Shown here: in pieces, positions 20,387 to 38,584 of the stretch
Position numbering within the stretch: position 1 is the first letter of the stretch
Layout: each line of letters starts with the position of its first letter
Made by a program: the position numbers and the translations under genes
The notes under the pieces: generated by a model
Databases searched by the model: none
What the model saw: only the letters and a program-made list of their open reading frames with translations
What the model was told of the DNA's origin: nothing
IMG/VR virus record: IMGVR_UViG_3300035703_000008
Span: 1 to 64,000 of that record
Direction: 5' to 3' (one strand)
DNA length: 64,000 nt

Positions 20387-21411
20387 TCAACCATATCCCC
20401 ATCTATCTCCAGAGTACCTATGAAGCCATTCCCCGGAGAGACATGGGGGTGGCCATCGACTATGACTGCAACATACCTGATCGCAATCTCTTGATTGACT
20501 GGAGTGGCAACTGTTTCCTTTGCCACTGCGAAGCATGGTTGCCGGTGAGCGTGGGGCAGATACAAGAATTTGACACATTGGAACAGGTCTGGAACAATCC
20601 TCGATCCCAGGTCATACGAGCAGACGTGCGAGATCGACGGTTCACACACTGCGCCGTAGATCGATGTGGTATACAGCACGGCAACATACACTGGGATCGA
20701 TATCAGATCAGCATCAACATCGATGAGAGCTGCAATCTCCGTTGTCCCAGTTGCAGGACCGATCTCATAATGCGAGACTCCGGCGCCGAGTACGAAGCCA
20801 AACTGGCACAAGTACGTCATGTGGTGCGGTTGTTAGAGGATTTTGATCAACCTGTACACATAGTCATGAGCGGCAATGGCGATCCACTGGCATCTGCGAT
20901 CATGCGCCCACTCATACATGAGTTCCAACCAAGGTCCACACAGACTTTCCGTTTGTTTACCAATGGACTTTTACTGAAGAAGCAGCTGGAAAAAAGCCGC
21001 ATCGTTCCCAACATCACCCAGTATTTCATATCCATTGATGCTGGTTCTGCTGACGTGTATCATCATGTGCGACAGCCAGGCCGTTGGTCTGTGCTGATCG
21101 ACAATCTCAATTATCTGCAGGCCGTGGCCAAAACACACAGGGCTGAAGTGCTGTTGAAATTTGTTCTACAACGCGACAACTGGCACGACATGGAAAACTT
21201 TGTGAACCTCTGTGTGAGCTATGGGTTCCACGGAGTTATCAATCGCTTGGAAGACTGGGGTACTTGGCCACAATTCCGTGATCACGACGTGATCGGTAAC
21301 CAAGATCATGTCCTCCATGATCAAGCTGTCACCGAGCTGGGGAGGGTTTACAGACTCTACGGTGATCGTGTACAATTCAATTCCAGCCTCAAGGATCTGG
21401 CCACTAAATGA
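20383..21411 (+). CDS. radical SAM protein (Twitch/SPASM-like)
   Basis: CNLRCPSC, SGNGDP, TNG, ISIDAG. Confidence 0.9.
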   Translation: MINHIPIYLQSTYEAIPRRDMGVAIDYDCNIPDRNLLIDWSGNCFLCHCEAWLPVSVGQIQEFDTLEQVWNNPRSQVIRADVRDRRFTHCAVDRCGIQHGNIHWDRYQISINIDESCNLRCPSCRTDLIMRDSGAEYEAKLAQVRHVVRLLEDFDQPVHIVMSGNGDPLASAIMRPLIHEFQPRSTQTFRLFTNGLLLKKQLEKSRIVPNITQYFISIDAGSADVYHHVRQPGRWSVLIDNLNYLQAVAKTHRAEVLLKFVLQRDNWHDMENFVNLCVSYGFHGVINRLEDWGTWPQFRDHDVIGNQDHVLHDQAVTELGRVYRLYGDRVQFNSSLKDLATK

Positions 21412-22949
21412 CTGACTCATCCAAAGACATCACGCACGATTTCACTGCCAATCAACGAGATTATGCGGTATTTTTACCGGCTATCTCCAGTTTCTACGCT
21501 GGTTACATAGGTCGCGAACGCCACGGCGTGGGACTCGAACCCGGGCGTTTACCCGCTGCCTTGGGCACCATGGAAGCCATGAACTGGCTCAACCCCACAA
21601 AAAGCCTGTTCCCTTACCGGTGGAGTCTTTACTCGGCTGGTCACGCTGACCTTGATCTCAAGAGATTCAATGCCAAAGAAGACATGGTCAGGAACAGAGA
21701 TCCCGGTTCTACCCTGGTCATGGACTCGGGTGGATTCCAGATCGCCAAAGGTGTGTGGCCTGGGCGCTGGGCTGATCCCACAGACAAGGCCGCAGAAAAG
21801 AAACGCCGAGCCGTGTTGGAATGGCAATGCGGGGTGGCCGATTATGGCATGACCATGGATATTCCCACATGGACTTTCCGTGATCCTGTGGCCGCAGAAA
21901 AATGTGGAATCCACAGCTACGAAGATGCTGTCAAGGCCACCAAGTTCAACAACGACTATTGGATCGCTAATCGCCACGGATCCACCAAGATATTGAATGT
22001 GCTGCAAGGTGGTAATCATGCCGAAGCCGATCACTGGTACGATCTCATGAAAGGCTACTGCGATGCTGGCCAACACGAAAATCCCTTCAATGGGTGGGGC
22101 ATGGGAGGCCAGAACATGTGTGACGTGCATCTCGTGCTCAAACGCATTGTAAATCTCATACACGATGGTCTCTTGGAACCGGGCCTGCACGACTGGATGC
22201 ACTTCCTGGGCACAAGCAAACTGGAATGGGCAGTGCTGCTCACAGACATCCAGAGAGCCGTGAGATACTATCACAATCCCAATTTCACCATCAGCTTCGA
22301 CTGTGCTTCACCGTTCTTGGCCACAGCCAACGGCCAGCTCTATCACAACATCAACGTGGCCAATCGCACCAAATGGAGCTACAACATGAGCGCCACTGTG
22401 GACGACAAGAAGTATGCCACAGACACTCGCTTGTTTGGTGATGCTGTGCGGCAAGACGGCATCCATCCCCAATTTGAAGATTCACCGATCACCAGTCGCA
22501 TACAAGTGTCAGATGTGTGTTGGTACCGGCCCGGCGATCTCAACAAGATCGGCAAAGAAGGTCGCACATCCTGGGACAGCTTCAGCTATGCCCTGCTCAT
22601 GGGACACAATGTGTGGACTCATATCGAAGCAGTACAGCGTGCCAATCATGCCTATGATTCGGGCACAGCACCTGACATGATGGTGCATCCCTTGGATCCC
22701 ATCTATGACGCCAGATCGGTGATCAATCGAGTATTTGCTGCTCGTGATCGCCAAAAGAGCTTGGCTATAATTGATGATCATGCTAAAGTTTGGGAAAGGA
22801 TCATAGGCACACGTGGTTTCACAGGAAAACGAGCAGTAAACGCACACACCATGTTCAACAACTTTTTCCCTGATGACGACGTCCAAGATCAAGAACCCGA
22901 ACTCGACCCTGATAAACTGGCCCAACTAGAGGAGAATGATGATGTATGA
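21408..22949 (+). CDS. TGT-fold guanine transglycosylase (DpdA-like)
   Basis: MDSGGFQ, MDIP, VLQG, HFLG and SFDCASP motifs; deazaguanine genes nearby. Confidence 0.8.
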   Translation: MTDSSKDITHDFTANQRDYAVFLPAISSFYAGYIGRERHGVGLEPGRLPAALGTMEAMNWLNPTKSLFPYRWSLYSAGHADLDLKRFNAKEDMVRNRDPGSTLVMDSGGFQIAKGVWPGRWADPTDKAAEKKRRAVLEWQCGVADYGMTMDIPTWTFRDPVAAEKCGIHSYEDAVKATKFNNDYWIANRHGSTKILNVLQGGNHAEADHWYDLMKGYCDAGQHENPFNGWGMGGQNMCDVHLVLKRIVNLIHDGLLEPGLHDWMHFLGTSKLEWAVLLTDIQRAVRYYHNPNFTISFDCASPFLATANGQLYHNINVANRTKWSYNMSATVDDKKYATDTRLFGDAVRQDGIHPQFEDSPITSRIQVSDVCWYRPGDLNKIGKEGRTSWDSFSYALLMGHNVWTHIEAVQRANHAYDSGTAPDMMVHPLDPIYDARSVINRVFAARDRQKSLAIIDDHAKVWERIIGTRGFTGKRAVNAHTMFNNFFPDDDVQDQEPELDPDKLAQLEENDDV

Positions 22950-23151
22950 ATCGCGTATCCGGCATCTCGAAATCACGCACGAGACTCTGAACAAGAAAAT
23001 CGATGCCTTGGAAAAGACCGGTGTATTCACGGATCCGCATCTAGCGGAAATGAAGAAACAAAAACTGCAGGTGAGAGATCAACTCAGTGACCTGCGTCGT
23101 CGGCAGTGGGAACACGACCACGAAACAGTTGACATGGATGATGGCCGATGA
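22936..23151 (+). CDS. DUF465/YdcH-like coiled-coil protein
   Basis: H..L...I..LE....MKKQKLQVRD pattern. Confidence 0.6.
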   Translation: MMMYESRIRHLEITHETLNKKIDALEKTGVFTDPHLAEMKKQKLQVRDQLSDLRRRQWEHDHETVDMDDGR

Positions 23152-23738
23152 ACGAAAATCCTCTCACTCACTGGTCGATCTATCATGACTACATCTCAGA
23201 AAAATTCTTGTATGTCTGCAAAGATCGAAAAGTGCTAGAAATAGCCAGCTTCAACGGGCATCAGACGCTGGCTATACAACACAATCAGCCCAGTGATCTA
23301 TTACTGGTGGAGCCTAACACCGAGACAGTCACGACCCTAGAATCGAAATTTCCCGAAGCTGAAATCATCAGCCAGGACATATTCGAAGTCTACAAAAATG
23401 ATTTACCAGCTGATGTAGTAGTTTGTTGTGGATTGTTATATCATTTGCATTGCCCGATCTATCTACTCGAGCTGATAGTAGAAAAGTCTGATCCTGAATT
23501 TATCATACTTGACTCAACTAATGTCAAAGATTTCACGCACGGGCAAGAAAAAATCAACGAACCCGGACATCGTTATTCGGCACTTAAAAAAACTGCTGGT
23601 TTATATGTAGTTTTTCCGCATCAGTATATCAATCAGGCATTGGAAAATCTGGGATATGCCATGACAATCTATCACGAACTCGAAGATTTAAAAATCCATA
23701 CCAAAGAAAACTGGATGGCAATGTGGAGAAAAAAATGA
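23148..23738 (+). CDS. class I SAM methyltransferase
   Basis: VLEIASFNG, VEP, DVVVCCGLLYH. Confidence 0.8.
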   Translation: MNENPLTHWSIYHDYISEKFLYVCKDRKVLEIASFNGHQTLAIQHNQPSDLLLVEPNTETVTTLESKFPEAEIISQDIFEVYKNDLPADVVVCCGLLYHLHCPIYLLELIVEKSDPEFIILDSTNVKDFTHGQEKINEPGHRYSALKKTAGLYVVFPHQYINQALENLGYAMTIYHELEDLKIHTKENWMAMWRKK

Positions 23739-24247
23739 ATCGCCCAGGGCACGAGCAGATAGCATTTTTCTGGGGCAACGAAGTCGAGCACACTCCCATG
23801 CTGGGACGACCCACCTTGTTTGTGGTAGGCTTGCGCAGCGTGTCAGACATCGAGCGAGAATTGGAAAAACGACCCGATGTCGAGCACATCTTTTTTGGAG
23901 CCAACGACAGTTATCTCCCCAGTGACTGGAAAGATCACCAGGCCTGGGAAAGCATGATCGCTACATTCCTGGATCGTGGCCATTGGTGCAGTCTGGATAT
24001 TCCATTCCGGTATGTGGAAGAGTTTCATGAAGGTGGTCTATGTGAACACCATCGTTTCATTCCCATCATCAAAGTTCCGATCCCTTACTCGGGACTCTGG
24101 AACTACAATACCTGTGTCAAGATCGACGATCGAGACTTCGCTGCCACCAATCCCGGTGTGTGGGTACATCAACTCCATGCGCTCATGAGTCGTGATCGAT
24201 TCACCGATTGGAGCCAATATAGCAAGGATGCCCCAGTCAATGACTGA
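23735..24247 (+). CDS. hypothetical protein in the deazaguanine neighbourhood
   Basis: GNEVEHTP..G.PTLFV and DF.ATNPGVW; core-like codon usage. Confidence 0.65.
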   Translation: MNRPGHEQIAFFWGNEVEHTPMLGRPTLFVVGLRSVSDIERELEKRPDVEHIFFGANDSYLPSDWKDHQAWESMIATFLDRGHWCSLDIPFRYVEEFHEGGLCEHHRFIPIIKVPIPYSGLWNYNTCVKIDDRDFAATNPGVWVHQLHALMSRDRFTDWSQYSKDAPVND

Positions 24248-25424
24248 CGATCGGTACTGGAACCAATCTTCTTTTTGCCCAGTGGCCTGGCGTGGGATCT
24301 ATGTAGATCCTGAAGGAAAAGTTGACAACTGTTGTATTTCATCCAATCGGTTGGGCAATCTTCATGATTCACCTATTGGGGAGATAGTGCAAGGTCGACG
24401 GTTCTTGGAAATAAGACAATCCATGATCGACGGCAACATCCCTCAGGGCTGTCAGGTATGCTACAATGGAGAATCTACAAATCTTCGGAGAGCATTTTTA
24501 GACAAGTTTTCCAAATACGATCGAGACATCTACGACGATGTTCGCGGATTTCGTCTTAATTATCTAGACCTAAGATGGAGTAATACCTGTAATTCTGCCT
24601 GTGTTTATTGTGGTCCAAAATTGAGTTCGAAGATCGCAGCCGAACAAGGAATAGAAATACGAAAAGACTCTGCAAACATAGATCGAACCAAGCAGTTTGT
24701 TGCTGATAACATCCACGACGTCAAGGATATCTATCTAGCCGGCGGAGAGCCTTTGCTGATAAAAGAAAACGAATGGTTATTGTCCTTGTTGCTAGAAAAA
24801 GGAATAGCACCGAGGATCCTGGTCAATACCAATCTCAGCCAAATTGACAACCGTGTCTTTGATCTACTCTGCCAATTCAACAATGTGCATTGGTTGATCA
24901 GTGGCGAGCATGTGGGAGAACACTATGAATACATCAGATATGGTAGTTCCTGGTCGCAGTTTGAAAAAAACGTTGATCATCTCTTAGAAAAGACAGTCCC
25001 GCTTGGTCATAGGTACGAATTTAATTTGGTATATTTTTTATTGAATTTGCAAGGGTTTTGGCAATACCTTGACTGGCTTAAGAGTAAAAAGATACCCGAT
25101 ATGGTGGTGCATCCGGCTTGGATCAGCAATGGTGTCATTGATCCACTGGATCCAAGGCGGGTACCCGAATCGTATCAACATCTCATACTAGAAAACATAC
25201 AGAAAAGATTGGAAAATGGAGATCATTGGGATAGGCAATTAGCACAACATCTGCTAAACTGTTGGCAAGAGACACAACGATACCCTAACCCCATATGGAG
25301 TTGTCGGACCAAATTGGCTTCGCTGGACAAGTCTAGAAATCTCAACAGCAAAAAATTATGGCCCGAAATCTGGGCCATGTTTGACCAACTAGCAAAAGAA
25401 TGGAAAGAAAATGAATCAAGATGA
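24240..25424 (+). CDS. radical SAM protein (Twitch/SPASM-like)
   Basis: CNSACVYC, AGGEP, NTN; N-terminal C..CC..CQVC. Confidence 0.9.
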   Translation: MTDDRYWNQSSFCPVAWRGIYVDPEGKVDNCCISSNRLGNLHDSPIGEIVQGRRFLEIRQSMIDGNIPQGCQVCYNGESTNLRRAFLDKFSKYDRDIYDDVRGFRLNYLDLRWSNTCNSACVYCGPKLSSKIAAEQGIEIRKDSANIDRTKQFVADNIHDVKDIYLAGGEPLLIKENEWLLSLLLEKGIAPRILVNTNLSQIDNRVFDLLCQFNNVHWLISGEHVGEHYEYIRYGSSWSQFEKNVDHLLEKTVPLGHRYEFNLVYFLLNLQGFWQYLDWLKSKKIPDMVVHPAWISNGVIDPLDPRRVPESYQHLILENIQKRLENGDHWDRQLAQHLLNCWQETQRYPNPIWSCRTKLASLDKSRNLNSKKLWPEIWAMFDQLAKEWKENESR

Positions 25425-25860
25425 AAGAGAAACCGCACAACGCATCCAAGACCAAGCACGGCGTTGGATCTGGGTCACATTCCAGCGAGAAGGCATACAC
25501 CGATACCCAGCGGCAGCCACCGATCCCAAGCTCGCCACCGGCAGCTGGGACGACGTTTCATTCTTGGCTAATGCTCATCGTCATATCTTCCATTTTCGTG
25601 TGGCTCTCCAAGTATTCCACAATGACCGAGATGTGGAGTTCATTCAGTTCAAGCGGTGGCTTGAACGGTTGTATAGTAGCGACTCGGGTGTACTGTCTCT
25701 CGACTTCAAAAGTTGTGAGATGATGGCCGATGACCTATATATACAGATAGCAGACCGCTATCCAGGACGAGCGGTCTGTGTCGAGGTAGCCGAAGATGGA
25801 GAAAACGGCTGTCGCATCGAGTATGAAACCCATCGTCCATCAATGTCAATCAATATCTAG
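25411..25860 (+). CDS. QueD paralogue (DpdL-like T-fold protein, candidate CDG decarboxylase)
   Basis: LANAHRHIF matches LxxxHRHxF; SCE and EDGENG T-fold C-terminus. Confidence 0.65.
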   Translation: MNQDERETAQRIQDQARRWIWVTFQREGIHRYPAAATDPKLATGSWDDVSFLANAHRHIFHFRVALQVFHNDRDVEFIQFKRWLERLYSSDSGVLSLDFKSCEMMADDLYIQIADRYPGRAVCVEVAEDGENGCRIEYETHRPSMSINI

Positions 25861-25873
25861 AAGGAAAAAGAAC

Positions 25874-26086
25874 ATGGCACGTCCAGCGTTCCGACCCAAT
25901 CCTCGAGTCACCCAGGTCTTCGAAGACCTAGAGCAATACCTACGTTTCTGCCAGGACTTTGGCTACAAGTACGACGAGCGCGACCTGTACAACTGGAAGA
26001 GCTACCCTTATCAACAATTCAACAAGCATCTCCAAGGCAAAACAGCCAAGGACATGTGGACACAAGACCAAAGGCGATCTCGATAG
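25874..26086 (+). CDS. hypothetical protein
   Basis: AAGGA RBS; packed between neighbours. Confidence 0.6.
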   Translation: MARPAFRPNPRVTQVFEDLEQYLRFCQDFGYKYDERDLYNWKSYPYQQFNKHLQGKTAKDMWTQDQRRSR

Positions 26087-26092
26087 TTGCCG

Positions 26093-26986
26093 ATGATTCA
26101 TATATTTTTTGTTCCAGGAATGTTTGGATCAATGTTGGAATATGTACTTAGATCCTATACCAATGAAGGATCTCCTGTTGTTGCAGACATACGTTCCGAC
26201 GGATCAATGCACAGCTTTGACAAACGATATCATCCAGTGACGATTCAACAAATACTTGATGAATTTGATCACGAGGCTGATATTACCACTCCTATATATC
26301 CTTGTATCGGCGGAGAACTGGCAGATATTGTGGAATCTTTTCGACTAAGGTCTAAAACCTGGAATCAGGATCACAAGATCCTGATCTCTAGCCCAAATCA
26401 GGCATGGACGGAAATTAATATTTTATTCCACTATCACAAAACTTTTCTTCGTGGCAGCCCAGGATTAGAAATATATGCTAAACAAAATCCTCCAATGGCA
26501 TCCAAATGGAACACAAATTATTCTGACTGGTCTCAGATGCATGTGTGGGAAATGCGAGAATGGTTTAGTCTTTTTTATAGAAAATGGTCAGAGTCCTGGA
26601 TAGTGTCAGAGATTGACGAAGATTTTTTACACATTACTAACCAAGATCTAATGCAGGATACTAAAAAGACTGTACAAAAAATATTGTCGTGGTGTAATCT
26701 TACCCCAAAACCAGGATTAGATAAATTCATTGATGAATACGTTTCAAAACAAACTTATATACTTGACGAATACAACAAAATAGAAAATGCAGTTGATTGT
26801 GTCGTTAATAATCGAGACTACCATTGGGACAGACTCAGCCCTGTTGGAGAAGCGATGATACAAACCAAGCTCAGGGATCATGGACTGGAAATACAATGTC
26901 ATGGGCTTGACACTTTTCCAACATCCAGTGTAGAGTTAAAAAAACTAACATATCCGTCTATCAATCTACATACAATACAATCATGA
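26093..26986 (+). CDS. sulfotransferase/P-loop-like hypothetical protein
   Basis: N-terminal FVPGMFGS resembles 15303; AT-rich. Confidence 0.45.
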   Translation: MIHIFFVPGMFGSMLEYVLRSYTNEGSPVVADIRSDGSMHSFDKRYHPVTIQQILDEFDHEADITTPIYPCIGGELADIVESFRLRSKTWNQDHKILISSPNQAWTEINILFHYHKTFLRGSPGLEIYAKQNPPMASKWNTNYSDWSQMHVWEMREWFSLFYRKWSESWIVSEIDEDFLHITNQDLMQDTKKTVQKILSWCNLTPKPGLDKFIDEYVSKQTYILDEYNKIENAVDCVVNNRDYHWDRLSPVGEAMIQTKLRDHGLEIQCHGLDTFPTSSVELKKLTYPSINLHTIQS

Positions 26987-28188
26987 GAAAACTTTTTTAC
27001 ATGGGCCTTGAAGCCTATCAAGAACGCTACACTCTACAACTCACCGAGTGGAACCGGCGTGTGTTTGACCGGCGTGGACTGGACGTGGTCTATGTGCCAG
27101 GACTTACACTGGACAATGCCCAAAAGATATCAGTGGGACAGGTCTTGGACGCGCATGGTCGCAGTTATTTTGCCATGAGCCAGATGATGAATCTCGTCAG
27201 ACTCATGCAACAAGGAGATGTCACCAGCGAAGATGTTGTCTACTTTGAAGACATGTTCCAGCCCGGTATTGAAAGCCTGCCTTACATCCTGGATCAAGTG
27301 CCCGACAATCTTCGTCCTAGGATCTTTGTTCGCTGTCTTGCTCAAGCCATTGATCCCGATGACTTCGTTCATGTCTGGGGCATGGCGGGCTGGATGTCAA
27401 CGTATGAACGGATGGTGAATCAGATTCCGGGACTCACTGTGCTGGCCACCAACGAAGAGATGGTGGCACACATGAGGATCGCAGGCTGGACTGCTCCCAT
27501 CTACAACATCTCGGGCCTGGCTTTTGGCCGCGAAGAAGTGCTGGAGCGTATTGGTGGTCGAGACCGGATCCGACCCTTTGCTGAACGTCCTCGCAGGGTG
27601 GCATTTGCTGCTCGATTCGATCAAGAGAAGCAGCCGGGATTCTTCATGGATCTCATCGAGATGACCGGCGAACTCAACTCCACGCCCACCGAATGGTGTA
27701 TCTATTCCGGTAGCGCATTGAGATCCAACAATCCCGAGTTCGTAGAACGTGCCCGTGCCATGGAAAAGAAAGGTCAGCTGCGTATCTATGAAAATCTCTC
27801 CAAGAACGACTACTATGCCTTGCTCAATGATACCAGGGTGTTGTTTAACTGTGCCCTGCAAGATTGGGTTTCAAACACTGTAAGCGAAGCCGATACCCTG
27901 GGCGCCAATGTGGTATACCCAGCCTATCGTAGTTTCCCGGAAACATTTGCCAATGATCCTGAGCGACTCTACGTGCCCTGGAGCATCGACGATGCCTATC
28001 ACAAAGTTCAGAATGCCTTGTATGCACCACATCACAACATGGGCCTGATCTCCGCCTGGAACGATGGCACTGTGGATCGCATCGTGGACATCATCACAGG
28101 ACAAGGCGAACAATGGAATCGCGCAGGCAATCGCTATCGCGATCATGTCGCACACGAAAAATATCAAGTAGTCAAAATCGAAGGATAA
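26983..28188 (+). CDS. GT-B glycosyltransferase
   Basis: FAARFDQEKQP and ALQDWVSNTVSEADTLG (variant of the GT4 E-x7-E region). Confidence 0.75.
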   Translation: MRKLFYMGLEAYQERYTLQLTEWNRRVFDRRGLDVVYVPGLTLDNAQKISVGQVLDAHGRSYFAMSQMMNLVRLMQQGDVTSEDVVYFEDMFQPGIESLPYILDQVPDNLRPRIFVRCLAQAIDPDDFVHVWGMAGWMSTYERMVNQIPGLTVLATNEEMVAHMRIAGWTAPIYNISGLAFGREEVLERIGGRDRIRPFAERPRRVAFAARFDQEKQPGFFMDLIEMTGELNSTPTEWCIYSGSALRSNNPEFVERARAMEKKGQLRIYENLSKNDYYALLNDTRVLFNCALQDWVSNTVSEADTLGANVVYPAYRSFPETFANDPERLYVPWSIDDAYHKVQNALYAPHHNMGLISAWNDGTVDRIVDIITGQGEQWNRAGNRYRDHVAHEKYQVVKIEG

Positions 28189-28190
28189 TC

Positions 28191-29150
28191 ATGGCCAAGA
28201 TGGTGTTAGTCACAGGAGCTGCCGGTTACATCGGCGGCGAAACAGTTTTACGTCTCAAAGATCAAGGGCACACTGTGATAGGAGTGGATACCCGAGCTGC
28301 TCCAATGCATCTACGACACAGTGCAGATCGGTTTTTCCAGGAAGACTTCAGTTCTAAACTGGGGCTTGACATCATCGCCAAATTCAGTCCCGATGTGATC
28401 GTGCATTGTGCTGGGTCTAGTTTGGTGGGACCCAGCATTGGCAATCCACGACAATACTATCACAACAACTTCTGCAAGACCAAGACCATGGTGGATTATC
28501 TCTTGGACAATGCCCAACGCAAGTTGCCCAGGATCGTGTTTTCTAGTTCGGCTGCGGTGTACGGAGAACCAGTGATGACACCGTGCCGTGAAGAAGATCC
28601 AGCCCTGCCCATATCGCCCTATGGCGAGAGCAAGCTCATGATCGAGATGCTGCTGAACAGCTATCATCATGCCTACAATCTCGAGTCGGTGTCGTTCCGC
28701 TATTTCAATGCCTGCGGTGCTGACAGTCTCAACCGACATGGTCAAGAACCCGGGGCCACACACATCATCGCACGTGTGCTGGAGAGCATACGCAATGATC
28801 AAGACTTTGTGTTGTTTGGTGATGCCTATGCCACTGCTGACGGTAGCTGTGTAAGAGATTATGTGCATGTGGAGGACATCGCCAATGCACACGTGGCTGC
28901 CGTGGAAAGCGACATCACCACTGGTTCCTATAACTTAGGCACCAATCAAGGTATCAGCAATCTCGAGATAGTGAACATGGCCGAGAAAATCACCGGTCGT
29001 CGGGTGCGAGTCATGCATGGACCTAACCGCGCCGGTGATCCCGCTGTGCTCACAGCCAATGCCGAAAAGTTCCAAAAGACATCGGGCTGGCAGGCACGAT
29101 TCTCCCTGGAAGACATGATCACACATGCATGGAAATGGTATAACCAATGA
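28191..29150 (+). CDS. galE: UDP-glucose 4-epimerase
   Basis: TGAAGYIG, FSSSAAVYG, YGESK, RYFNACG, RDYVHV. Confidence 0.9.
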   Translation: MAKMVLVTGAAGYIGGETVLRLKDQGHTVIGVDTRAAPMHLRHSADRFFQEDFSSKLGLDIIAKFSPDVIVHCAGSSLVGPSIGNPRQYYHNNFCKTKTMVDYLLDNAQRKLPRIVFSSSAAVYGEPVMTPCREEDPALPISPYGESKLMIEMLLNSYHHAYNLESVSFRYFNACGADSLNRHGQEPGATHIIARVLESIRNDQDFVLFGDAYATADGSCVRDYVHVEDIANAHVAAVESDITTGSYNLGTNQGISNLEIVNMAEKITGRRVRVMHGPNRAGDPAVLTANAEKFQKTSGWQARFSLEDMITHAWKWYNQ

Positions 29151-29728
29151 GTTTTGACACCATCCGTAGATTTGAACAGGCCTTGGGTGAATACACCGGT
29201 GCTCCCTACGTGATCATGACCGATTGCTGCACCCATGCCATTGAGCTGTGCTTGAGACATGAACGGCCCAGCAATCTCGCTTTCACAGCCTACACCTATC
29301 TATCCGTCCCCATGCTGATGCACAAGTTGAACATAGAGTATCGGCTCATTCCCGAGGATTGGACCGGCGAGTATCAATTCCATGGTAGCCGAGTCTGGGA
29401 TTCAGCCCGTAGGTTGGAGCGTGGCATGTATAGACCCGGGCAGATGCAGTGCCTGAGTTTTGGGCATGGCAAGCCTTTACAGATAGGCCGTGGCGGTGCT
29501 ATACTGTTGGATGATGCCCAGACCTATGATGTCATGATCCAGCAACGCTATGATGGTCGCGACCTAAATATCCTACCCTGGGAGAAACAGCAAACATTCC
29601 GGGTGGGTTATCATTATCGTCCCACCATAGAAGAAGCCGAACGCGGACTGGAACTGTTGCCACAGGTCGCAGAAGCACCACGGTATGTGAAGTATCCTGA
29701 TTGTAGAAACATCACTATCATTAAATGA
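29147..29728 (+). CDS. short DegT/DnrJ-family PLP aminotransferase-like protein
   Basis: FE..L..Y.G, CT.A, DSA, SFGHGKPL..GRGG. Confidence 0.7.
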   Translation: MSFDTIRRFEQALGEYTGAPYVIMTDCCTHAIELCLRHERPSNLAFTAYTYLSVPMLMHKLNIEYRLIPEDWTGEYQFHGSRVWDSARRLERGMYRPGQMQCLSFGHGKPLQIGRGGAILLDDAQTYDVMIQQRYDGRDLNILPWEKQQTFRVGYHYRPTIEEAERGLELLPQVAEAPRYVKYPDCRNITIIK

Positions 29729-29765: not shown

Positions 29766-30467
29766 ATGGAAAAACAAACCAAGTACCTCAGCGATGCCAT
29801 CCGTGATCGCATGCAGAGCACCAGCAAGCGATTTTGGGCCAGCGACAACATCAGCGAATACATCGCACCAAGCGACAAAGAACATCTGATCAACGAGGCC
29901 ACCGAAGCCTTTGAATTGGTCTTGGACCGACTGCTCATTGACAGGAAAACCGATCCCAACAGTCGGGGCACAGCACGACGATTGGCCAAGATGTATTTCA
30001 ACGAAATCATGGCCGGTAGGTATGATGCTGCGCCCGACTGCACCGCTTTCCCCAATGATTCCGAGGATCGCTACGAAGGCATGTTGGTGGTGCGGAGCGA
30101 AATCCGCAGCATGTGCAGCCATCATCACCAACCTGTGGTGGGTGTGGCTTATATTGGTATCTTGGCTGCAGAAAAACTGATTGGACTTAGCAAGTATACC
30201 CGCATCGCTCAGTGGTGCAGCCGGCGTGGTACGCTGCAGGAAGAACTCTGCAACGACATCGCGCGGGAAATCATGCGGGCAACTGATTCAAAAGATGTGG
30301 GCGTGTATATCCAAGCTACGCATGGCTGTTGCGAGAATCGTGGCATCATGGCGCATAGTTCCTTGACCCAGACCACGGTTTTGCACGGTGCTTTCAAGAC
30401 CGATCCGGCAGTGAAGAAAGAGTTCATCGACAACATCAAGCTACAACAAGACTTTGCACCTAGGTAA
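29766..30467 (+). CDS. folE: GTP cyclohydrolase I
   Basis: SMCSHHH, GLSKY.R, LQEE, HGCCENRG. Confidence 0.95.
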   Translation: MEKQTKYLSDAIRDRMQSTSKRFWASDNISEYIAPSDKEHLINEATEAFELVLDRLLIDRKTDPNSRGTARRLAKMYFNEIMAGRYDAAPDCTAFPNDSEDRYEGMLVVRSEIRSMCSHHHQPVVGVAYIGILAAEKLIGLSKYTRIAQWCSRRGTLQEELCNDIAREIMRATDSKDVGVYIQATHGCCENRGIMAHSSLTQTTVLHGAFKTDPAVKKEFIDNIKLQQDFAPR

Positions 30468-30474: not shown

Positions 30475-30503
30475 TTGACCTAAAATTCCCCAGATCGTAT
30501 AAT
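30475..30503 (+). promoter_or_regulatory. sigma70-type promoter
   Basis: TTGACC-17-TATAAT. Confidence 0.8.
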
Positions 30504-30536
30504 ACAAACATCTTATTACCTTCTGGGGATATGCAC

Positions 30537-32035: not shown

Positions 32036-32079
32036 AGTGGACTTTGGCGCTCATCCCACTTTAAAAATTCTGCGTGTCA
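32036..32079 (+). promoter_or_regulatory. preQ1-I-like riboswitch candidate upstream of queD
   Basis: AGTGG/CCACT stem, loop ending CATC, A-rich tail TTAAAAA, possible pseudoknot TGGCGC/GTGTCA. Confidence 0.45.
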
Positions 32080-32112
32080 TCAAACTTGCTCACTCAATAA
32101 AGGAGACTAGTG

Positions 32113-32616
32113 ATGGCAAATCAACCCCGTACCTACCGGTACACATCCACCAAAGAGTATCACGACGCTTTTCCCTGTGCCTATCGTCAATGGCGCGCGG
32201 ACAGTCATTGCAACTTGATACATGGCTACAGTTTTAGCATGAAGTTCTATTTTGGCACTGACGATCTCGATGTGCGTAACTGGTCCGCAGACTATGGTGG
32301 TCTCAAAGAACTCAAACACACCCTGGAAGATCAGTTTGATCATACCTTGCTGGTAGCACAGGATGATCCTGAACTGGCCACTTTCCAGCTTTTGCAGGAA
32401 CGCAACCTGGCCAAGCTCACTGTGCTGCCACGCCTGGGCTGCGAAGGTCTGGCAGACATGCTGTACAAATATGTCAACGGTGTTTATATCCCCGATATGT
32501 GGGGACCTGGTGAAGCCGAAAGGCTTTGGTGCTATCGTGTCGAAGTGCGAGAGACACAGGCAAACATGGCTTTCCGCGAAGGCCATAGAGAATGGAACGA
32601 AGATCTTTTCCAATGA
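32113..32616 (+). CDS. queD: 6-carboxy-5,6,7,8-tetrahydropterin synthase
   Basis: CNLIHGYS, DYGGLK, FDH, GCEGLA, VRET. Confidence 0.85.
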   Translation: MANQPRTYRYTSTKEYHDAFPCAYRQWRADSHCNLIHGYSFSMKFYFGTDDLDVRNWSADYGGLKELKHTLEDQFDHTLLVAQDDPELATFQLLQERNLAKLTVLPRLGCEGLADMLYKYVNGVYIPDMWGPGEAERLWCYRVEVRETQANMAFREGHREWNEDLFQ

Positions 32617-33437
32617 CCCAATCAATCCCACCCATCAGTATATTGCTGCCCACCCGTGGCAGGACCACACAGCTAGAACGCAGTGTGATGAGCTTGATCA
32701 ACCTCGCCGACGACCCCACTGGAATACAGTGGTTGCTTGGGTTCGACACCGACGATCAGCCCAGTTTTGACTACTTCCAGACCAATGTCGCATCTCGTAT
32801 ATCTGAGTCGGGCGGTCGATACACCTGCCTGGGCTTTGAACCCCTGGGCTATCATCGCCTCAATGAGTATGTGAATCGCCTAGCACATGCCAGCACCGGT
32901 GAATGGATGGTGTTCTGGAACGACGATGCTGTGATGCAGACACAAGGCTGGGACACAGTGATCGCCAGCCATACCGGACGTTTTTGCCTGCAGGCCTTCG
33001 ACACACACAAAAAACACCCTTACTCGATCTTCCCTATCGTGCCAAGGAAGTGGCTGGAAATCATCGGACACCTCAGCCTACATCAGCTCAATGATGCTTG
33101 GTTGAGCCAGATCGCTTGGTTGTTGGACATCATGGTCAGGATCGATGTGGTGGTAGATCATGAGAGGTACGATCTCACTGGCAAGAACAACGACGACACA
33201 TTCAAGCAACGCCAGATATTCGAAGGGAATCCCAGCGATCCCAGGGATTTCAATCACGAAACTTTCCGAAAAACACGCATACACGAAGCCGGTCGTATCG
33301 CATACTATCTACACAATCAAGGCTATGATCTCACGCACTGGGAAGAAGTAGTCACTGGACGCCGTGATCCCTGGGCCAAGATGCTGGAGGCCGATGTCAA
33401 TGGTCAAATGACCAAACTGGATATACCTAAAAAATGA
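32613..33437 (+). CDS. GT-A (family 2-like) glycosyltransferase
   Basis: ISILLPTRGR, DTDD, WNDD. Confidence 0.8.
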   Translation: MTQSIPPISILLPTRGRTTQLERSVMSLINLADDPTGIQWLLGFDTDDQPSFDYFQTNVASRISESGGRYTCLGFEPLGYHRLNEYVNRLAHASTGEWMVFWNDDAVMQTQGWDTVIASHTGRFCLQAFDTHKKHPYSIFPIVPRKWLEIIGHLSLHQLNDAWLSQIAWLLDIMVRIDVVVDHERYDLTGKNNDDTFKQRQIFEGNPSDPRDFNHETFRKTRIHEAGRIAYYLHNQGYDLTHWEEVVTGRRDPWAKMLEADVNGQMTKLDIPKK

Positions 33438-34168: not shown

Positions 34169-34884
34169 AAATCAAAAATTATCTAGTAAAAAGTCTGTAT
34201 CGGGTACGAGACCCCAATTGGCTGGTGCACGATCGAGGCCACGAAACCGATCTCTACGAACGCTATCTCGACATGCATCGTGTCAGTGTTGCCAGCTTCA
34301 AGAAGCACTTATTGGGTGACTGGGAGCTGAAATTTTTCACCGGCGAAGTTGATTCCATCAACCAGGCCTTTGAACAGACATTCTGGCGCATACATGAACT
34401 CTGGCACAACGAACCCTGTAACATACTCTACGCCGACCCCGACACTGTGGCCAGGAATGGCCTAGACCCTTGGAATCTAGATGGGTTCCGCATGTTCAAC
34501 TTCACAGACCCACGCAGTTTTGAAAAAGAAAATCCCTACGGTGCCAAGTTTAAATGGTTTTTCAATGCCGGTGTGAGATACTTCTCACATACCATGGATG
34601 AAAAAGTCTGGCAGGTGGGCACAGACATAGCTCGCAACTGGGATCACACTACCTATGACACCGAGCAGATCATACTCAATTCCATGCTGTGGAGCCAGAA
34701 AGTGCGGTTGGATCAAGTCCTGATGCCGCGAGTGGCCTATCAGGCCATGAGCCTGGACCAACGTCCCGTTTGGTGGCACGATGTCTGGAACGGATGCTCG
34801 CTCAATCAGGCCGCTGTGATCCACGTGCATGGCAGCAGGAATGCTCAGTCTAGGCTAGAGCTTATGAAGCAGTTGACCAACTAG
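34165..34884 (+). CDS. nucleotide-diphospho-sugar transferase (GT-A)
   Basis: YADPD, FNAGV, EQ.ILN, IHVHG. Confidence 0.7.
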   Translation: MKIKNYLVKSLYRVRDPNWLVHDRGHETDLYERYLDMHRVSVASFKKHLLGDWELKFFTGEVDSINQAFEQTFWRIHELWHNEPCNILYADPDTVARNGLDPWNLDGFRMFNFTDPRSFEKENPYGAKFKWFFNAGVRYFSHTMDEKVWQVGTDIARNWDHTTYDTEQIILNSMLWSQKVRLDQVLMPRVAYQAMSLDQRPVWWHDVWNGCSLNQAAVIHVHGSRNAQSRLELMKQLTN

Positions 34885-34893
34885 GAAAATATC

Positions 34894-35199
34894 ATGACCA
34901 ACGAAAACATCACCACTGATCCTGAATGGGATAAACTACTGTCACAAGTGAAATCGGCCATTTCCGACTATGAGCAATGCATAGCCGATGGTCGTGAGTG
35001 GGCCGACCCTTTCGCACAGACCAAATCTGAAAAAAAGCCAGCTGCACGCAAGACCAAAAAATCTGCTCGATTTGATCAAGACACCTTGTTGTCCATGACC
35101 AAAGAACAGCTCGAACAACTGGGACGTGAACACGGCATCGAACTGGATCGCCGTCGGCGCAAGCAAGATCTCGTGGATCAACTCATGACCGCAAAATGA
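34894..35199 (+). CDS. protein with C-terminal Rho-N/HeH-like domain
   Basis: MTKEQLEQLGREHGIELDRRRRKQDLV. Confidence 0.6.
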   Translation: MTNENITTDPEWDKLLSQVKSAISDYEQCIADGREWADPFAQTKSEKKPAARKTKKSARFDQDTLLSMTKEQLEQLGREHGIELDRRRRKQDLVDQLMTAK

Positions 35200-35810
35200 A
35201 CGATACCGAAAAAATATTCACAGACATCATACAAAAACATCGATGGCGTGACCATGTTTGTGGTACTGGCAGTACCATGTCCAACACCGAAAACATCCGT
35301 CGAGAACTGCCAGTGATCGTTGCGAAATTAGGGTGCACCAGCCTTTTAGATGCGCCCTGCGGCGACTACAGCTGGATGAGTCAAGTGGAATGGCCCAAGG
35401 GATTCCAATACATCGGTGCCGACATCGTGGCTCCCATGATCGATCGATTGAAAACACAATGGCCAGATCGAGATTTTCGACACATCAACATCATCACAGA
35501 TACACTGCCCAAAACGGACGTCATGCTGTGTCGAGATTGCCTGATCCACTTGCCCTGGGCCGACATCCGGCGAGTGATACAAAATGTGGTAGATTCGGGC
35601 ATTGGATATCTGGCTACCACTTCCTACTCGCGTGGTGAACAAAACGACATCGGCATGGGCGGGTGTCATCACATCAATCTCCAGGCCAAACCCGCTTGCT
35701 TTCCCGAGCCGTTGCATGCTATACTAGATCAAGGACACCAGATCCTAGAACATCACATCATGTTCTGGAGTCGAGATCAACTCATAACAGTATTGGAGAA
35801 TTGGCATTGA
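35196..35810 (+). CDS. class I SAM methyltransferase
   Basis: GTGS, LDAPCGD, GADIV, RDCLIH. Confidence 0.8.
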   Translation: MNDTEKIFTDIIQKHRWRDHVCGTGSTMSNTENIRRELPVIVAKLGCTSLLDAPCGDYSWMSQVEWPKGFQYIGADIVAPMIDRLKTQWPDRDFRHINIITDTLPKTDVMLCRDCLIHLPWADIRRVIQNVVDSGIGYLATTSYSRGEQNDIGMGGCHHINLQAKPACFPEPLHAILDQGHQILEHHIMFWSRDQLITVLENWH

Positions 35811-36319
35811 AAAAGAACTGCTTGGACTGGCAGCAAACACAAGCTCTGACCCAGGAGATCTTGCGGCAGATGCACCGTGACTCCTGGCAACCCGACTATG
35901 TGGTAGGACTCACCCGAGGCGGACTTGTCCCAGCAGTGATGATCAGCCAATATCTCGATTGTCCCATGCATGCCCTGGGCGTGAGTCTCAGAGACAATGC
36001 AGACAACGGTTGTGAAAGCAATCTCTGGATGGCCGAAGATGCCCATGCTGGAAAGAAGATCCTTGTCGTGGACGACATCAACGACACTGGAGCCACGCTG
36101 GACTGGATCATGCAGGATTGGTCAGCGGGATGCTTGCCCCATGACACGAGATGGGATTCAGTATGGAACCATAATGTGAGATTCGCTGTGCTGGTAGACA
36201 ATCTCGCCAGCCAGTGCAGTCGTGGCATGGACTACTTTGGCCAAGAAATCAACAAAGCCGAGGATCCGCAATGGGTGGTATTTCCCTGGGAATCCTGGTG
36301 GAAAGGACAACAGTCATGA
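35807..36319 (+). CDS. type I phosphoribosyltransferase (Gpt-like)
   Basis: GLTRGGLVPA, VVDDINDTGAT, WVVFPWE. Confidence 0.9.
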   Translation: MKKNCLDWQQTQALTQEILRQMHRDSWQPDYVVGLTRGGLVPAVMISQYLDCPMHALGVSLRDNADNGCESNLWMAEDAHAGKKILVVDDINDTGATLDWIMQDWSAGCLPHDTRWDSVWNHNVRFAVLVDNLASQCSRGMDYFGQEINKAEDPQWVVFPWESWWKGQQS

Positions 36320-36687
36320 GCGATGTATTCAGTGACCAGCGTAAATTCATGCAGGCTTGCGGTCAGACCACAGGCTATTTCAATCAAGATCAGTTTGATC
36401 TTTATCTCAGACTCATCGACGAGGAAGTCGAGGAACTCAAAGAAGCCAACCGCCTCGGGGATCGCGTGGAGTGTCTAGATGCCCTAGTCGACATCATGGT
36501 TGTCACTGCTGGTGCCTTGCACAGTCTGGGTGTGGATGCTGACGGCGCCTGGAAAGAAGTCATGCGTAGCAACTTTGACAAAGTAGATCCCAGGACTGGT
36601 CGTGTAAACAAAAGAGAAGATGGGAAAGTCCTCAAACCTGACAACTGGGAACCTCCCCGTTTGGCGCCTTTCGTGAGATCGGAATGA
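36316..36687 (+). CDS. MazG/HisE-like all-alpha NTP pyrophosphohydrolase
   Basis: LIDEEVEEL, DALVD, EV.RSN..K, REDGKVLKP. Confidence 0.85.
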   Translation: MSDVFSDQRKFMQACGQTTGYFNQDQFDLYLRLIDEEVEELKEANRLGDRVECLDALVDIMVVTAGALHSLGVDADGAWKEVMRSNFDKVDPRTGRVNKREDGKVLKPDNWEPPRLAPFVRSE

Positions 36688-37193
36688 TCCAACCCTTGCG
36701 TGATGACCTCATGGTGCAGCAACAACTGCCGGCGGGCTATACCCACAAGGGTGCCTGGCAGCACATGGTGGCTGTGATCATGTTGAATCAGACTGGTCGC
36801 CGACCTGTGAAAACTGTGTTCCCCGTATTCATCAATCGTTGGCCAGGTCCCGTGGAGTTCTTGCATGCCGATTGCGACAATGTGCGTGATGTGATCTGGC
36901 CCTTGGGCATGGTCAATGTGCGCACCAAACGATTGCAACGGATGACCCAGGATTTTTTGAACTGGGATGGCGTAGATGCCACTGACTTGTACGGCATTGG
37001 CAAGTACGGATCAGATTCCTACGAGATCTTTTTCAAACAAAACTACGCCGTCGAACCCACAGACAAAGAACTGACACGATATCTCCGAGAGGAAATTTTC
37101 AGGAATCAACCATGGCACGATACTCAGTCTCACCACAGTACAAAAAAAGCATTGAAGAACGAGAAATCTGGCACCGCAATGGTGTTGAGCTAG
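36684..37193 (+). CDS. HhH-GPD DNA glycosylase (MBD4-like)
   Basis: IMLNQT, PLGM..VR, LYGIGKYGSDSY.IF, DKEL..Y. Confidence 0.8.
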   Translation: MIQPLRDDLMVQQQLPAGYTHKGAWQHMVAVIMLNQTGRRPVKTVFPVFINRWPGPVEFLHADCDNVRDVIWPLGMVNVRTKRLQRMTQDFLNWDGVDATDLYGIGKYGSDSYEIFFKQNYAVEPTDKELTRYLREEIFRNQPWHDTQSHHSTKKALKNEKSGTAMVLS

Positions 37194-37507
37194 TAAGGAC
37201 TCAGGGCTGGCGCGGAGGCAGCGTCTGGCTTATAACCGAAGACGACGAGCCGCTGGAAATTGATGCTGCAAATCCCGACGGCTTGCTGGTCACAGACTGC
37301 GGTTACGAATACGAACTTGACAGCTTCTGGGATGGTGTCTACGAAGACTGGGCCTGGCCTGAAGATATGAGCGAGGAAGAGCAGGAACAGATCCGGGCCG
37401 CATGGGAAGAGGACAGCTACGAAGCCTTGGAAAATCTAGGCTGGACCAATGTGGACACTGAAACCTGGTTCCATGGGCCCTTGGAGATCGTGCTCGAAGA
37501 TGAATAG
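37112..37507 (+). CDS. acidic hypothetical protein
   Basis: AGGA RBS; continuous ORF. Confidence 0.6.
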   Translation: MARYSVSPQYKKSIEEREIWHRNGVELVRTQGWRGGSVWLITEDDEPLEIDAANPDGLLVTDCGYEYELDSFWDGVYEDWAWPEDMSEEEQEQIRAAWEEDSYEALENLGWTNVDTETWFHGPLEIVLEDE

Positions 37508-37691
37508 CATCGAAAAAATCTGGGCCAGAGCTACCGGGCATGTCATGGGCGAAAACGACCACGATCGCCCCGATGTGCCCATTCTCACTTTACGCGAAGC
37601 CAGGATTGCGTTAATATTAAAAACATCCTGGGTGGTCATACATGTGATCACCTGCTTTTTTATCATGGCAAATGTGATAAGGCATTGGTAA
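37500..37691 (+). CDS. small membrane protein
   Basis: Hydrophobic C-terminal half; overlaps both neighbours. Confidence 0.6.
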   Translation: MNSIEKIWARATGHVMGENDHDRPDVPILTLREARIALILKTSWVVIHVITCFFIMANVIRHW

Positions 37692-38584
37692 TGGAAAAGA
37701 TAACATACACCGAGATTTTTTACAGCCTGCAGGGCGAAGGTCGTTGGACCGGAGTTCCTTCAGTGTTCTTTCGTACTTTTGGATGCAACTTCCGCTGCCG
37801 TAAGTTTGGACTTCCGCAGGATCAAGAAGTAGCAGGGCACAACCCCGAAGTGATCGAAGTCATACGACTGATAGAGCAAGATCCTGATCGCTATCAACGA
37901 TTCGAGGACCTGCCCTTGGTCACGACAGGTTGCGACAGCTATGCTTCGATCTATCCCGAGTTCAAGCGATTTAACGCCCAAGAAGACGTGACCACTATCG
38001 CATCTCGCATACACGACTTGATACCCAATCAAACATGGACACAGGATTCGGGCAGCGACATCCACTTGGTGATCACTGGCGGCGAGCCTTTGCTGGGCTA
38101 TCAACAGCTTTACCCTGAACTACTCGACCACTGTCGCCAGCGTGGGTTGCAAAATCTCACTTTCGAGACCAACGGTACCCAAGTGCTCTACGACCAAGTC
38201 TATGACTACCTTTTCAATGATTTTACTCGTTTAGGTCGAGATCGTGATCGTCTCACCTTCTCGGTGAGTCCCAAGTTGCCCTGTTCTGGTGAAGCCTGGG
38301 AAACTGCCATATGCCCCGACGTCGTCATGGAATACCAAGAAGTTGGTATGACCTACCTCAAGTTTGTGGTAGCCACTGATCAAGATGTAGCTTATGCTGC
38401 TGCTGCAGTGGAACTTTATCGCAGTGCTGGATTCACAGGACCGGTGTATCTTATGCCCGCCGGTGGTGTTCCGCAGATATATAATCTAAACACTCAGCAG
38501 GTAGCGTCATTGGCACTCCAGAAAGGCTGGCGATACAGTCCGCGTCTGCAAGTGGATATCTGGCGCAATGCCTGGGGCACTTGA
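37691..38584 (+). CDS. queE: 7-carboxy-7-deazaguanine synthase (radical SAM)
   Basis: EIFYSLQGEG, F.RTFGCNFRC..CDS, TGGEP, ETNGT, SPK, RLQV. Confidence 0.88.
   Translation: MEKITYTEIFYSLQGEGRWTGVPSVFFRTFGCNFRCRKFGLPQDQEVAGHNPEVIEVIRLIEQDPDRYQRFEDLPLVTTGCDSYASIYPEFKRFNAQEDVTTIASRIHDLIPNQTWTQDSGSDIHLVITGGEPLLGYQQLYPELLDHCRQRGLQNLTFETNGTQVLYDQVYDYLFNDFTRLGRDRDRLTFSVSPKLPCSGEAWETAICPDVVMEYQEVGMTYLKFVVATDQDVAYAAAAVELYRSAGFTGPVYLMPAGGVPQIYNLNTQQVASLALQKGWRYSPRLQVDIWRNAWGT

Follow-up and report, generated by a model that had tools for sequence, protein, structure and literature searches.

Which base is made, and into which nucleic acid is it placed, when a phage encodes the enzymes leading from GTP to 7-carboxy-7-deazaguanine (CDG) and a transglycosylase-like protein, and neither QueC nor QueF is found? 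The question is raised by the first 64 kb of the 208,932-bp IMG/VR record IMGVR_UViG_3300035703_000008 (this 64,000-nucleotide stretch is hereafter called the window), in which a gene at 21408 codes for a DpdA-like protein with the predicted fold of tRNA-guanine transglycosylases (TGTs) and a gene at 25411 for a putative T-fold protein of the DpdL family; folE, queD, queE and genes for putative sugar-handling enzymes are located nearby (Table 1). Our reading, to which we give a probability of roughly 0.6, is that these genes form a QueC-independent 7-deazaguanine DNA-modification module, and that the base made by it is probably glycosylated. Gene conservation was counted over 80 related IMG/VR loci, 26 of which had full flanks, and three relatives that were 95-100% complete were used for the completeness checks on QueC, QueF, QueE and a phosphoribosyltransferase (PRTase).

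The TGT-fold protein at 21408 and its substrate

Searches of Pfam, PHROG, NCBIfam and the PDB with the sequence of the 21408 protein returned nothing, and only comparisons of folds and profiles were informative. An AlphaFold2 (AF2) model based on an alignment of 63 diverse family members had a pLDDT of 90.2 and a pTM of 0.89; the best 50 matches of this model in a Foldseek search against the PDB were all TGTs (E about 1e-7), and VIA-align aligned it to TGTs with Z scores of 18.6-19.7 over about 300 residues. Three motifs with the TGT signature were present, namely LVMDSGGFQ (D106), MTMDIPT (D151) and ISFDCASPF (D298), and residues D106, S107, G109, D151, H265, G268 and D298 were invariant in the 63 members. 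D106, D151 and D298 would be equivalent to D102, D156 and D280 of TGT, to judge by where the motifs lie and by the alignments from hhalign. The model, both structural comparisons and the conserved motifs bear out the TGT fold that an earlier note on the window had assigned to this protein.

The earlier note had also suggested that the protein be compared with DpdA subfamilies and with tRNA TGTs. The profile of the 21408 family aligned with DpdA2 of phage VH7D (hhalign probability 96.3%, E 1.6e-9, 173 columns running from the DSGG motif through the (Y/F)D motif) and with DpdA of phage ACP17 (96.7%), which is 34-36% identical to DpdA2 of phages nt-1 and VH7D. The Pfam TGT model PF01702 was not matched by the protein (hmmscan, E <= 0.01), and scanning the entire record in six frames gave no match to it at E <= 1 either. 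By these profiles, the 21408 protein appears to be a distant relative of DpdA2, at the superfamily level. The transglycosylase of phage phiST, DpdA3 (CGPG_00065), differs from it in length (259 versus 513 aa) and was weakly related, with an hhalign probability of 58.6% (E 9.6e-5, 82 columns), a Foldseek E value of 2.7e-3 against the model, and no match by BLASTP. The DpdA2 enzymes of VH7D and nt-1 place deazaguanines into DNA; the bases found in these phages are preQ0, preQ1 or G+, at a low level, and for the VH7D enzyme the insertion of preQ1, of preQ0 and of some CDG has been demonstrated (PMC10516641). The VH7D and nt-1 systems resemble the one described here in the profile-level homology of the transglycosylase and in the shared DSGG, D and (Y/F)D motifs, whereas their gene sets include QueC together with QueF or ArcS, and the window cluster has DpdL and neither QueC nor QueF.

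Whether the base is exchanged in DNA or in tRNA was judged from gene position, relatives and motifs. In all 26 full-flank relatives, the 21408-type gene was located between the polymerase/clamp genes and DpdL, and phage PA5oct (Wroclawvirus) has a homologue with 35% identity in the same arrangement. PA5oct DNA is G-modified: restriction enzymes with G in their sites fail to cut it, and nucleases specific for hypermodified DNA attack it (PMC12191111). If the target were tRNA instead, deazaguanine would be inserted into phage or host tRNAs that have a GUN anticodon, and would tune translation. The fold, which matches tRNA-guanine transglycosylases, is consistent with such a role, and tRNA-Tyr(GTA) and tRNA-Asn(GTT), two possible TGT substrates among the 11 tRNAs encoded in the window, leave it a small probability. 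However, the nearest characterised relatives are the DNA-acting DpdA2 enzymes, tRNA TGTs have a CxCxxC zinc motif that is missing here, as is a Pfam TGT match (only two cysteines, C299 and C371, follow the barrel core), the gene is part of a replication module in every full-flank relative, and in PA5oct it is the DNA itself that is G-modified. On these grounds DNA appears to be the better-supported substrate, and we regard a tRNA target as very improbable. The eleven tRNA genes (Met x2, Tyr-GTA, Glu, Gly x2, Asn-GTT, Trp, Cys, Arg and Ser) lie at 49115-63423 and are mostly clustered at 60.1-63.4 kb of the window.

The predicted route from GTP to CDG and the DpdL-family protein

The earlier note had listed folE, queD and queE, and the three genes were found on the + strand with matches to PF01227, PF01242 and phrog_2076. 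The QueD-type protein is 53% identical to that of ACP17 and has the motif C-NLI-H-G-Y, i.e. CxxxHGY and not the canonical CxxxHGH; the same variant occurs in the QueD of phiST and ACP17. Since phiST makes 2'-deoxy-7-deazaguanine (dDG), the CxxxHGY proteins presumably represent a QueD subtype that is active although its metal ligands differ. These proteins also have a change where the first zinc histidine would be (YRQW) (window 32110-32616; L003:7802-8278; L005:5472-5966). In the QueE-like protein, C34 and C38 are parted from C83 by an insertion of about 40 aa, and the NCBIfam QueE equivalog models matched it only beneath their cut-offs; each of the three complete relatives had a QueE, with identities of 51-75%.

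No match to QueC (PF06508) or QueF (PF14489) was detected across the whole 208,932-bp record, and neither exceeded the cut-off in the three near-complete relatives, so that the absence noticed earlier for the window extends to the rest of the record and to these genomes. Weak QueC matches in the relatives turned out to be the PP-loop of an NAD synthase (PF02540, 173.5 bits; L086, G001:91637-92476), and one relative gave a weak QueF match of 15.5 bits, which is under the cut-off. The presence of FolE, QueD and QueE together with the absence of QueC suggests that the pathway ends at CDG or branches there, and, as no QueC or QueF was found, it would halt before preQ0. Conversion of GTP to CDG, and not onward to preQ0, is the predicted outcome that these searches support well.

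The protein at 25411, in which the earlier note had seen a T-fold paralogue with the motif LxxxHRHxF, belongs to the DpdL family by its motif and by homology to the DpdL proteins of ACP17 and phiST. Its sequence LANAHRHIF (L52, H56, R57, H58, F60) fits LxxxHRHxF, as opposed to CxxxHGH in QueD, and L52, H56, H58 and F60 were invariant across 14 diverse homologues. In tblastn comparisons it was 51.5% identical to ACP17 DpdL (E 1e-36) and 34.7% identical to phiST DpdL (CGPG_00067; E 9e-10), and it matched phrog_17812 with an E value of 9.4e-35. The DpdL profile aligned with that of phage QueD (hhalign 70.7%, E 3.8e-5, 84 columns), and the window protein itself gave no match to PF01242. The company it keeps in the cluster consists of FolE, QueD, QueE and the DpdA-like gene, with QueC absent. 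DpdL and its motif were described by Hutinet et al. 2023 (PMC10516641), in agreement with the earlier note, and the decarboxylation of CDG to 7-deazaguanine is a published proposal.

Among DpdL phages, the product has been defined chemically for phiST alone, which encodes DpdA3, DpdL, FolE, QueD, QueE and MazG and whose DNA contains dDG as a full replacement (PMC10516641). The window cluster is like that of phiST in having FolE, QueD and QueE without QueC, a DpdL with LxxxHRHxF, a MazG-like gene in the vicinity (beside DpdL in phiST) and a QueD of the CxxxHGY type; the phiST region compared had no glycosyltransferase (GT), GalE, DegT-like, P0003, PRTase or extra radical-SAM genes. When dpdL and dpdA of phiST or ACP17 were placed in E. 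coli, no dDG was formed, and it was considered that other enzymes may be needed (PMC10516641). The failure of the ACP17 pair suggests that partners were missing. We consider it likely that the DNA of the window phage carries a 7-deazaguanine made independently of QueC.

One candidate for such a partner is P0003, the product of the gene at 23735, which the earlier note had proposed as an extra step. The gene is real, its start being ATG 23735 (MNRPGH...) by alignment with relatives, and it accompanies the pathway in 24 of the 26 loci as well as in isolated phages, among which homologues were found in the PA5oct group and ACP17 only; in ACP17 the homologue is directly 5' of dpdA. Its 26 invariant residues suggest an enzyme. 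The AF2 model of P0003 (pLDDT 89.8) had no convincing structural neighbour and showed a weak resemblance to QueE and other radical-SAM cores (Z 5.4-6.4, TM 0.55-0.59). Three assignments were tried and set aside: 1) a QueE paralogue without a cluster, for which no cysteine motif was present and hhalign to QueE gave less than 1%, so that it was kept as a lead only, 2) a TIR or nucleoside-deoxyribosyltransferase-like protein, as suggested by Atlas features (0.82-0.90), for which the predicted fold gave no support, and 3) the designed 'Cake' repeat proteins that were the only matches of its profile in the PDB, which were taken as spurious. Directly 3' of DpdL, the small conserved protein most likely starts at ATG 25874, which is preceded by a GAAGGA motif.

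Putative glycosyltransferases in the company of DpdL

The 401-aa protein at 26983 is best read as a putative glycosyltransferase of the GT-B fold, GT4-like. Its homologues gave sub-threshold matches to the GT1-clan models PF00534, PF13524 and PF13692 (best E 8.3e-5), its Atlas features scored 1.00 to Glycos_transf_1 clusters, the family profile matched the GT4 enzyme WlaC with an E value of 0.024, and one GenBank record labels a homologue 'glycosyltransferase family 4'. Assignment as a queuosine mannosyltransferase (Atlas ranks 40 and 57) was rejected, because PF12038 was not matched anywhere in the genome.

In the collection of isolated phages, the GT-B gene was found within 2 kb of DpdL in all 16 records that had a GT-B homologue. 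These 16 DpdL phages comprise the PA5oct group, ACP17, the Xanthomonas phages BUDD and X1, and cyanophage BUCT-ZZ01, and the adjacency was seen in five unrelated phage lineages. In phage Phosso, a GT that is 43% identical to that of PA5oct follows right after DpdL; the gene order in ACP17 and PA5oct is dpdA, GT, dpdL; and the BUCT-ZZ01 operon reads QueE, purine PRTase, unknown gene, QueD, FolE, GT, TGT-like, DpdL, GT-B. BUCT-ZZ01 is a T4-like cyanophage of lake origin with Synechococcus elongatus as host. Its GT-B (L092:9001-10167) is 64% identical to that of the window and the adjacent DpdL proteins are only 34% identical, which suggests that the GT gene was recently exchanged horizontally, by itself.

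PA5oct and ACP17 share with the window the TGT-like/DpdA protein, GT-B, DpdL, QueE, QueD and a P0003 homologue, and PA5oct has in addition the PRTase, a Rossmann fragment and a polymerase that is 48% identical to that of the window. Their proteins are only distantly similar to those of the window (TGT-like protein 35% and GT-B 23% identical), and their clusters are without the two N-twitch radical-SAM enzymes, the extra methyltransferases and the full-length GalE that the window has.

Two more sugar-related genes, for a UDP-hexose 4-epimerase (GalE) and a short DegT/aminotransferase-like protein, follow the GT-B gene. Aligned with full-length sugar aminotransferases, the 193-aa DegT-like protein has two aligned blocks separated by a gap of about 110 residues, and it retains the block containing the lysine (GHGKPL). 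The possibility of a broken gene was rejected, for the length of 192-210 aa was constant in 48 relatives; this conservation argues for a minimised domain. The earlier note had named its genes correctly but had overlooked GT-B, GalE and the DegT-like protein as parts of the conserved core.

These genes bear on the identity of the base. [quoted passage not shown] The full dDG replacement in phiST, obtained with DpdA3, DpdL, FolE, QueD, QueE and MazG, the DNA of Vibrio phage VP1, which is fully 7-deazaguanine, the ability of VH7D DpdA2 to insert CDG, and the lack of a Pfam match for the window GT-B itself are in line with this. It is at odds with the 16 of 16 isolated-phage homologues that lie beside DpdL and the adjacent GT in Phosso, with the position of the GT between dpdA and dpdL in ACP17 and PA5oct, and with the ACP17 dpdA and dpdL that yielded no dDG without the GT, and we consider it unlikely. 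The membership of GT-B, GalE and the DegT-like protein in the conserved core, together with the GT-B/DpdL linkage, indicates that the product is probably not plain dDG or dCDG. The earlier note had expected dDG, dCDG or a new derivative in the DNA; the CDG-derived route and the G-specific restriction resistance of PA5oct agree with it, but plain dDG or dCDG is too narrow an expectation.

That a sugar is placed on the deazaguanine is a tentative suggestion, drawn from gene linkage, to which we give less than even odds. A chemical precedent is available in huimycin biosynthesis (HuiC/HuiG), in which a methyltransferase and a GT-B-type glycosyltransferase decorate a 7-deazapurine base. The actinomycete tubercidin and huimycin pathways share the GTP to CDG/preQ0 core and continue with a PRTase, or with a methyltransferase and a GT; they yield small-molecule antibiotics and use a UbiD-family decarboxylase, whereas the window cluster would act on a DNA base with DpdL; the comparison is one of pathway steps. 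In T-even phages, a phage-encoded GT-B enzyme and a UDP-sugar decorate an already modified DNA base (glucosyl-hydroxymethylcytosine) as a counter-defence. The T-even base is a pyrimidine and arises at the level of the nucleotide, unlike the deazaguanine proposed here, and the comparison is one of function.

The type of pathway was already known, and cultured cousins of the clade have been suspected of G modification. In the full-text literature we found no report tying DpdL to glycosyltransferases, nor one of a glycosylated deazaguanine in DNA. The present analysis adds that a specific GT-B accompanies DpdL in several phages that are unrelated to one another, and that in this clade sugar-nucleotide genes and the conserved P0003 do so as well.

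Genome setting, accessory genes and the proposed pathway

The deazaguanine cluster sits within the replication module of a widespread phage clade with genomes of about 345 kb. CheckV estimated the 208,932-bp record to be 60% complete, and relatives with the same cluster reach 342-347 kb, one of them with terminal repeats, which places the phage in this jumbo-phage clade. Among Logan contigs, a subsurface metagenome was the only run containing the entire window, and megablast of the region against isolated phages gave no nucleotide match. A conserved backbone was evident in the full-flank loci, in which each core gene was found beside the polymerase in 21-26 of 26 (Table 1); the genome-specific extras interleaved in it are mostly rare or absent among relatives. 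All genes discussed are on the + strand, and those from 20383 to 29728 overlap or abut. No terminator-like site on the + strand was found before 37629, in a promoter and terminator scan whose overall counts were the same as for shuffled sequence.

Table 1. Features of the modification cluster and its surroundings in the window; the last column gives the number of full-flank relatives (of 26) with the gene, unless another total is stated
Feature	Coordinates	Strand	Match or remark	Relatives
Family-B DNA polymerase (context)	16016..18673	+	48-49% identical to PA5oct and Phosso polymerases	26
338-aa protein, weak methyltransferase signal	18603-19619	+	Between polymerase and clamp	24
Sliding-clamp-like protein (context)	19655..20386	+	Homologues: Phosso 'sliding clamp beta', PA5oct EST35_0314	26
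Radical-SAM enzyme, N-terminal SPASM/twitch	20383..21411	+	PF04055 38.5 bits, PF13186 28.5 bits	6
TGT-fold DpdA-like base-exchange enzyme, putative (P0001)	21408..22949	+	513 aa	26
DUF465 small protein, accessory	22936..23151	+	PF04325 44.7 bits	7
SAM-dependent methyltransferase-like	23148..23738	+	Methyltransf_23 E 6.4e-5, below cut-off	0 of 80
P0003, conserved protein, candidate pathway partner	23735..24247	+	Between TGT-like gene and DpdL	24
N-terminal-twitch radical-SAM enzyme	24192..25424	+	NF033640 231.9 bits, cut-off 170	6
DpdL-family protein, putative T-fold (P0002), proposed CDG decarboxylase	25411..25860	+	149 aa	26
Small conserved protein, ~70 aa	25874..26086	+	Directly 3' of DpdL	26
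Unknown gene	26087	+	Genome-specific extra	
GT-B (GT4-like) glycosyltransferase, putative	26983..28188	+	401 aa	25
UDP-hexose 4-epimerase (GalE)	28113..29150	+	TIGR01179 291.6 bits, cut-off 262.3; PF01370 167 bits	24
Short DegT/aminotransferase-like protein	29147..29728	+	193 aa; PF01041 E 1.2e-10	22
GTP cyclohydrolase I (FolE)	29766..30467	+	PF01227 135.8 bits, cut-off 27	24
QueD-type CPH4 synthase (P0004)	32110..32616	+	PF01242 57.6 bits, above cut-off	21
Second glycosyltransferase	32592..33437	+	phrog_14945 'glycosyltransferase' E 2.6e-12	12
Weak FkbM-like methyltransferase	33434	+	Genome-specific extra	
Methyltransferase-like	35196..35810	+	Weak Methyltransf_12/23/25 matches	0 of 80
Purine (xanthine/guanine-type) PRTase	35663..36319	+	PF00156 65.5 bits	
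MazG-like NTP pyrophosphohydrolase	36214..36687	+	PF01503 46.8 bits; adjoins DpdL in relatives L055, L069	
HhH-GPD DNA-glycosylase-like	36684..37193	+	PF00730 26.2 bits, exactly at cut-off	
QueE-like CDG synthase (P0395)	37685..38584	+	phrog_2076 E 3.4e-48, full length	
SAM synthetase (MetK)	38823..39920	+	Full length; PF02773 187, PF02772 147, PF00438 105 bits; directly after QueE	

The 338-aa protein keeps its position in relatives at only about 35% identity, and thus evolves much faster than its neighbours. A 494-aa FG-GAP/VCBS-repeat protein (PF13517, 81.7 bits; weak sub-threshold match to TcdB_toxin_midN, E 0.009) is encoded at 30531-32015, between FolE and QueD, and no copy of it was found in any of the 80 related loci. 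Just 5' of this gene, at 30475-30503, is the promoter-like site that scored highest in the region (11/12).

Two radical S-adenosylmethionine (SAM) enzymes with an N-terminal twitch domain flank the TGT-like gene and P0003. The first has an intact CNLRCPSC motif and a stop codon overlapping the start of the TGT-like gene, and the second contains CNSACVYC (CxxxCxxC). Genes of the NF033640 type are scattered at differing positions of the cluster in relatives (L014-L079), with 20-46% identity, and the two enzymes may be tailoring enzymes or members of a mobile or diversifying accessory family. The SAM synthetase directly after QueE fits a supply of SAM to the three radical-SAM enzymes and the several methyltransferases.

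A gene for an HhH-GPD-like protein travels with the cluster. Host END nucleases sense modified bases via an inactivated EndoIII domain, so the phage protein could act as a decoy or in processing. In relative L049 an HhH-GPD-like gene is immediately 5' of DpdL (~9606), and the Phosso 'glycosylase' gene (L002:14379-14912) has the same position, with no Pfam match or similarity to the HhH-GPD-like protein detected.

The PRTase, for which the best PDB matches were purine PRTases (E 1.6e-11), brings in a different route, in which it would join CDG or 7-deazaguanine to phosphoribosyl pyrophosphate (PRPP) and the polymerase would incorporate the analogue dNTP, with MazG removing dGTP and the TGT-like protein having a secondary or repair role. 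TubE of tubercidin biosynthesis is a demonstrated CDG-PRPP phosphoribosyltransferase (PMC6112128), PRTase homologues are located in the PA5oct and BUCT-ZZ01 clusters as well, and a MazG-like gene accompanies DpdL both in the window and in phiST. However, only one of the three complete relatives had the PRTase and the other two, which keep the TGT-like gene, DpdL and QueE, lacked it, which weakens the PRTase as an obligatory step and argues against an obligatory TubE-like nucleotide route; the TGT-like gene, moreover, is universal in the clade, and no dedicated analogue kinase or reductase was identified, no systematic search for one having been made. Pre-replicative incorporation by this route is improbable in our view.

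For the module that we favour, with modification by base exchange and a sugar, the following steps are proposed: 1) FolE, QueD and QueE would convert GTP to CDG, as established for their families, with no continuation to preQ0, 2) the DpdL-family protein would process CDG, by decarboxylation to 7-deazaguanine according to the published proposal, 3) the DpdA2-like enzyme would swap guanine in phage DNA for the deazaguanine, as DpdA2 homology and the G-modified PA5oct suggest, and 4) GT-B, fed with UDP-hexose by the phage GalE, would add a sugar to the deazaguanine, either as the free base or in DNA, with the second glycosyltransferase possibly acting as well. It may be speculated that in this phage the product is tailored further by both N-twitch radical-SAM enzymes, by two to three of the methyltransferases and by the SAM synthetase, and the auxiliary PRTase and MazG-like protein could be involved in salvage of the released guanine and management of the nucleotide pool. 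The expected benefit would be a shield from restriction enzymes and from host enzymes recognising simpler deazaguanines. Restriction enzymes, END nucleases and Dag glycosylases target modified phage DNA, and a possible selective reason for the sugar is that host glycosylases attack phages with plain dDG. A fuller version, in which the DpdL plus GT-B phages have glycosylated 7-deazaguanine, the window phage adds a radical-SAM and methyl layer, and P0003 and the DegT-like protein are new enzymes of the pathway, is in our view less likely than not.

Several points weigh against the proposed module. As to base exchange, the 21408 protein lacks both a PF01702 match and the zinc motif of TGTs, and the phage encodes tRNA-Tyr(GTA) and tRNA-Asn(GTT) as possible substrates. 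The decarboxylase activity of DpdL is at the stage of a proposal (PMC10516641). As to the sugar, the window GT-B, a putative enzyme, has no Pfam match of its own, the obvious handles for a sugar on 7-deazaguanine are limited to N2/O6 or a retained carboxylate, and phiST makes dDG without a GT, which means that DpdL systems can do without a sugar step. The positions of the radical-SAM genes vary among relatives, as those of mobile accessory genes would, and the phage is known from assembled contigs only.

Phages and bacteria are actively contending over DNA modification with 7-deazaguanines, and of this pathway the branch with DpdL, an enzyme whose activity has never been reconstituted, is understood least. 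The GT-B/DpdL linkage offers a concrete reason why dpdA and dpdL alone failed in E. coli, and yields a testable prediction for the G modification of PA5oct, a therapeutic-candidate phage. If a glycosylated 7-deazaguanine is indeed present, no purine carrying a sugar would, to our knowledge, have been seen in a viral genome before, and the derivative of the window phage would add to the eight 7-deazaguanines that have been described. Metagenomes contain a very large number of TGT-like family members (clustering gave 884 groups at 50% identity and over 7,800 at 90%), which suggests that the base, whatever its identity, is environmentally common.

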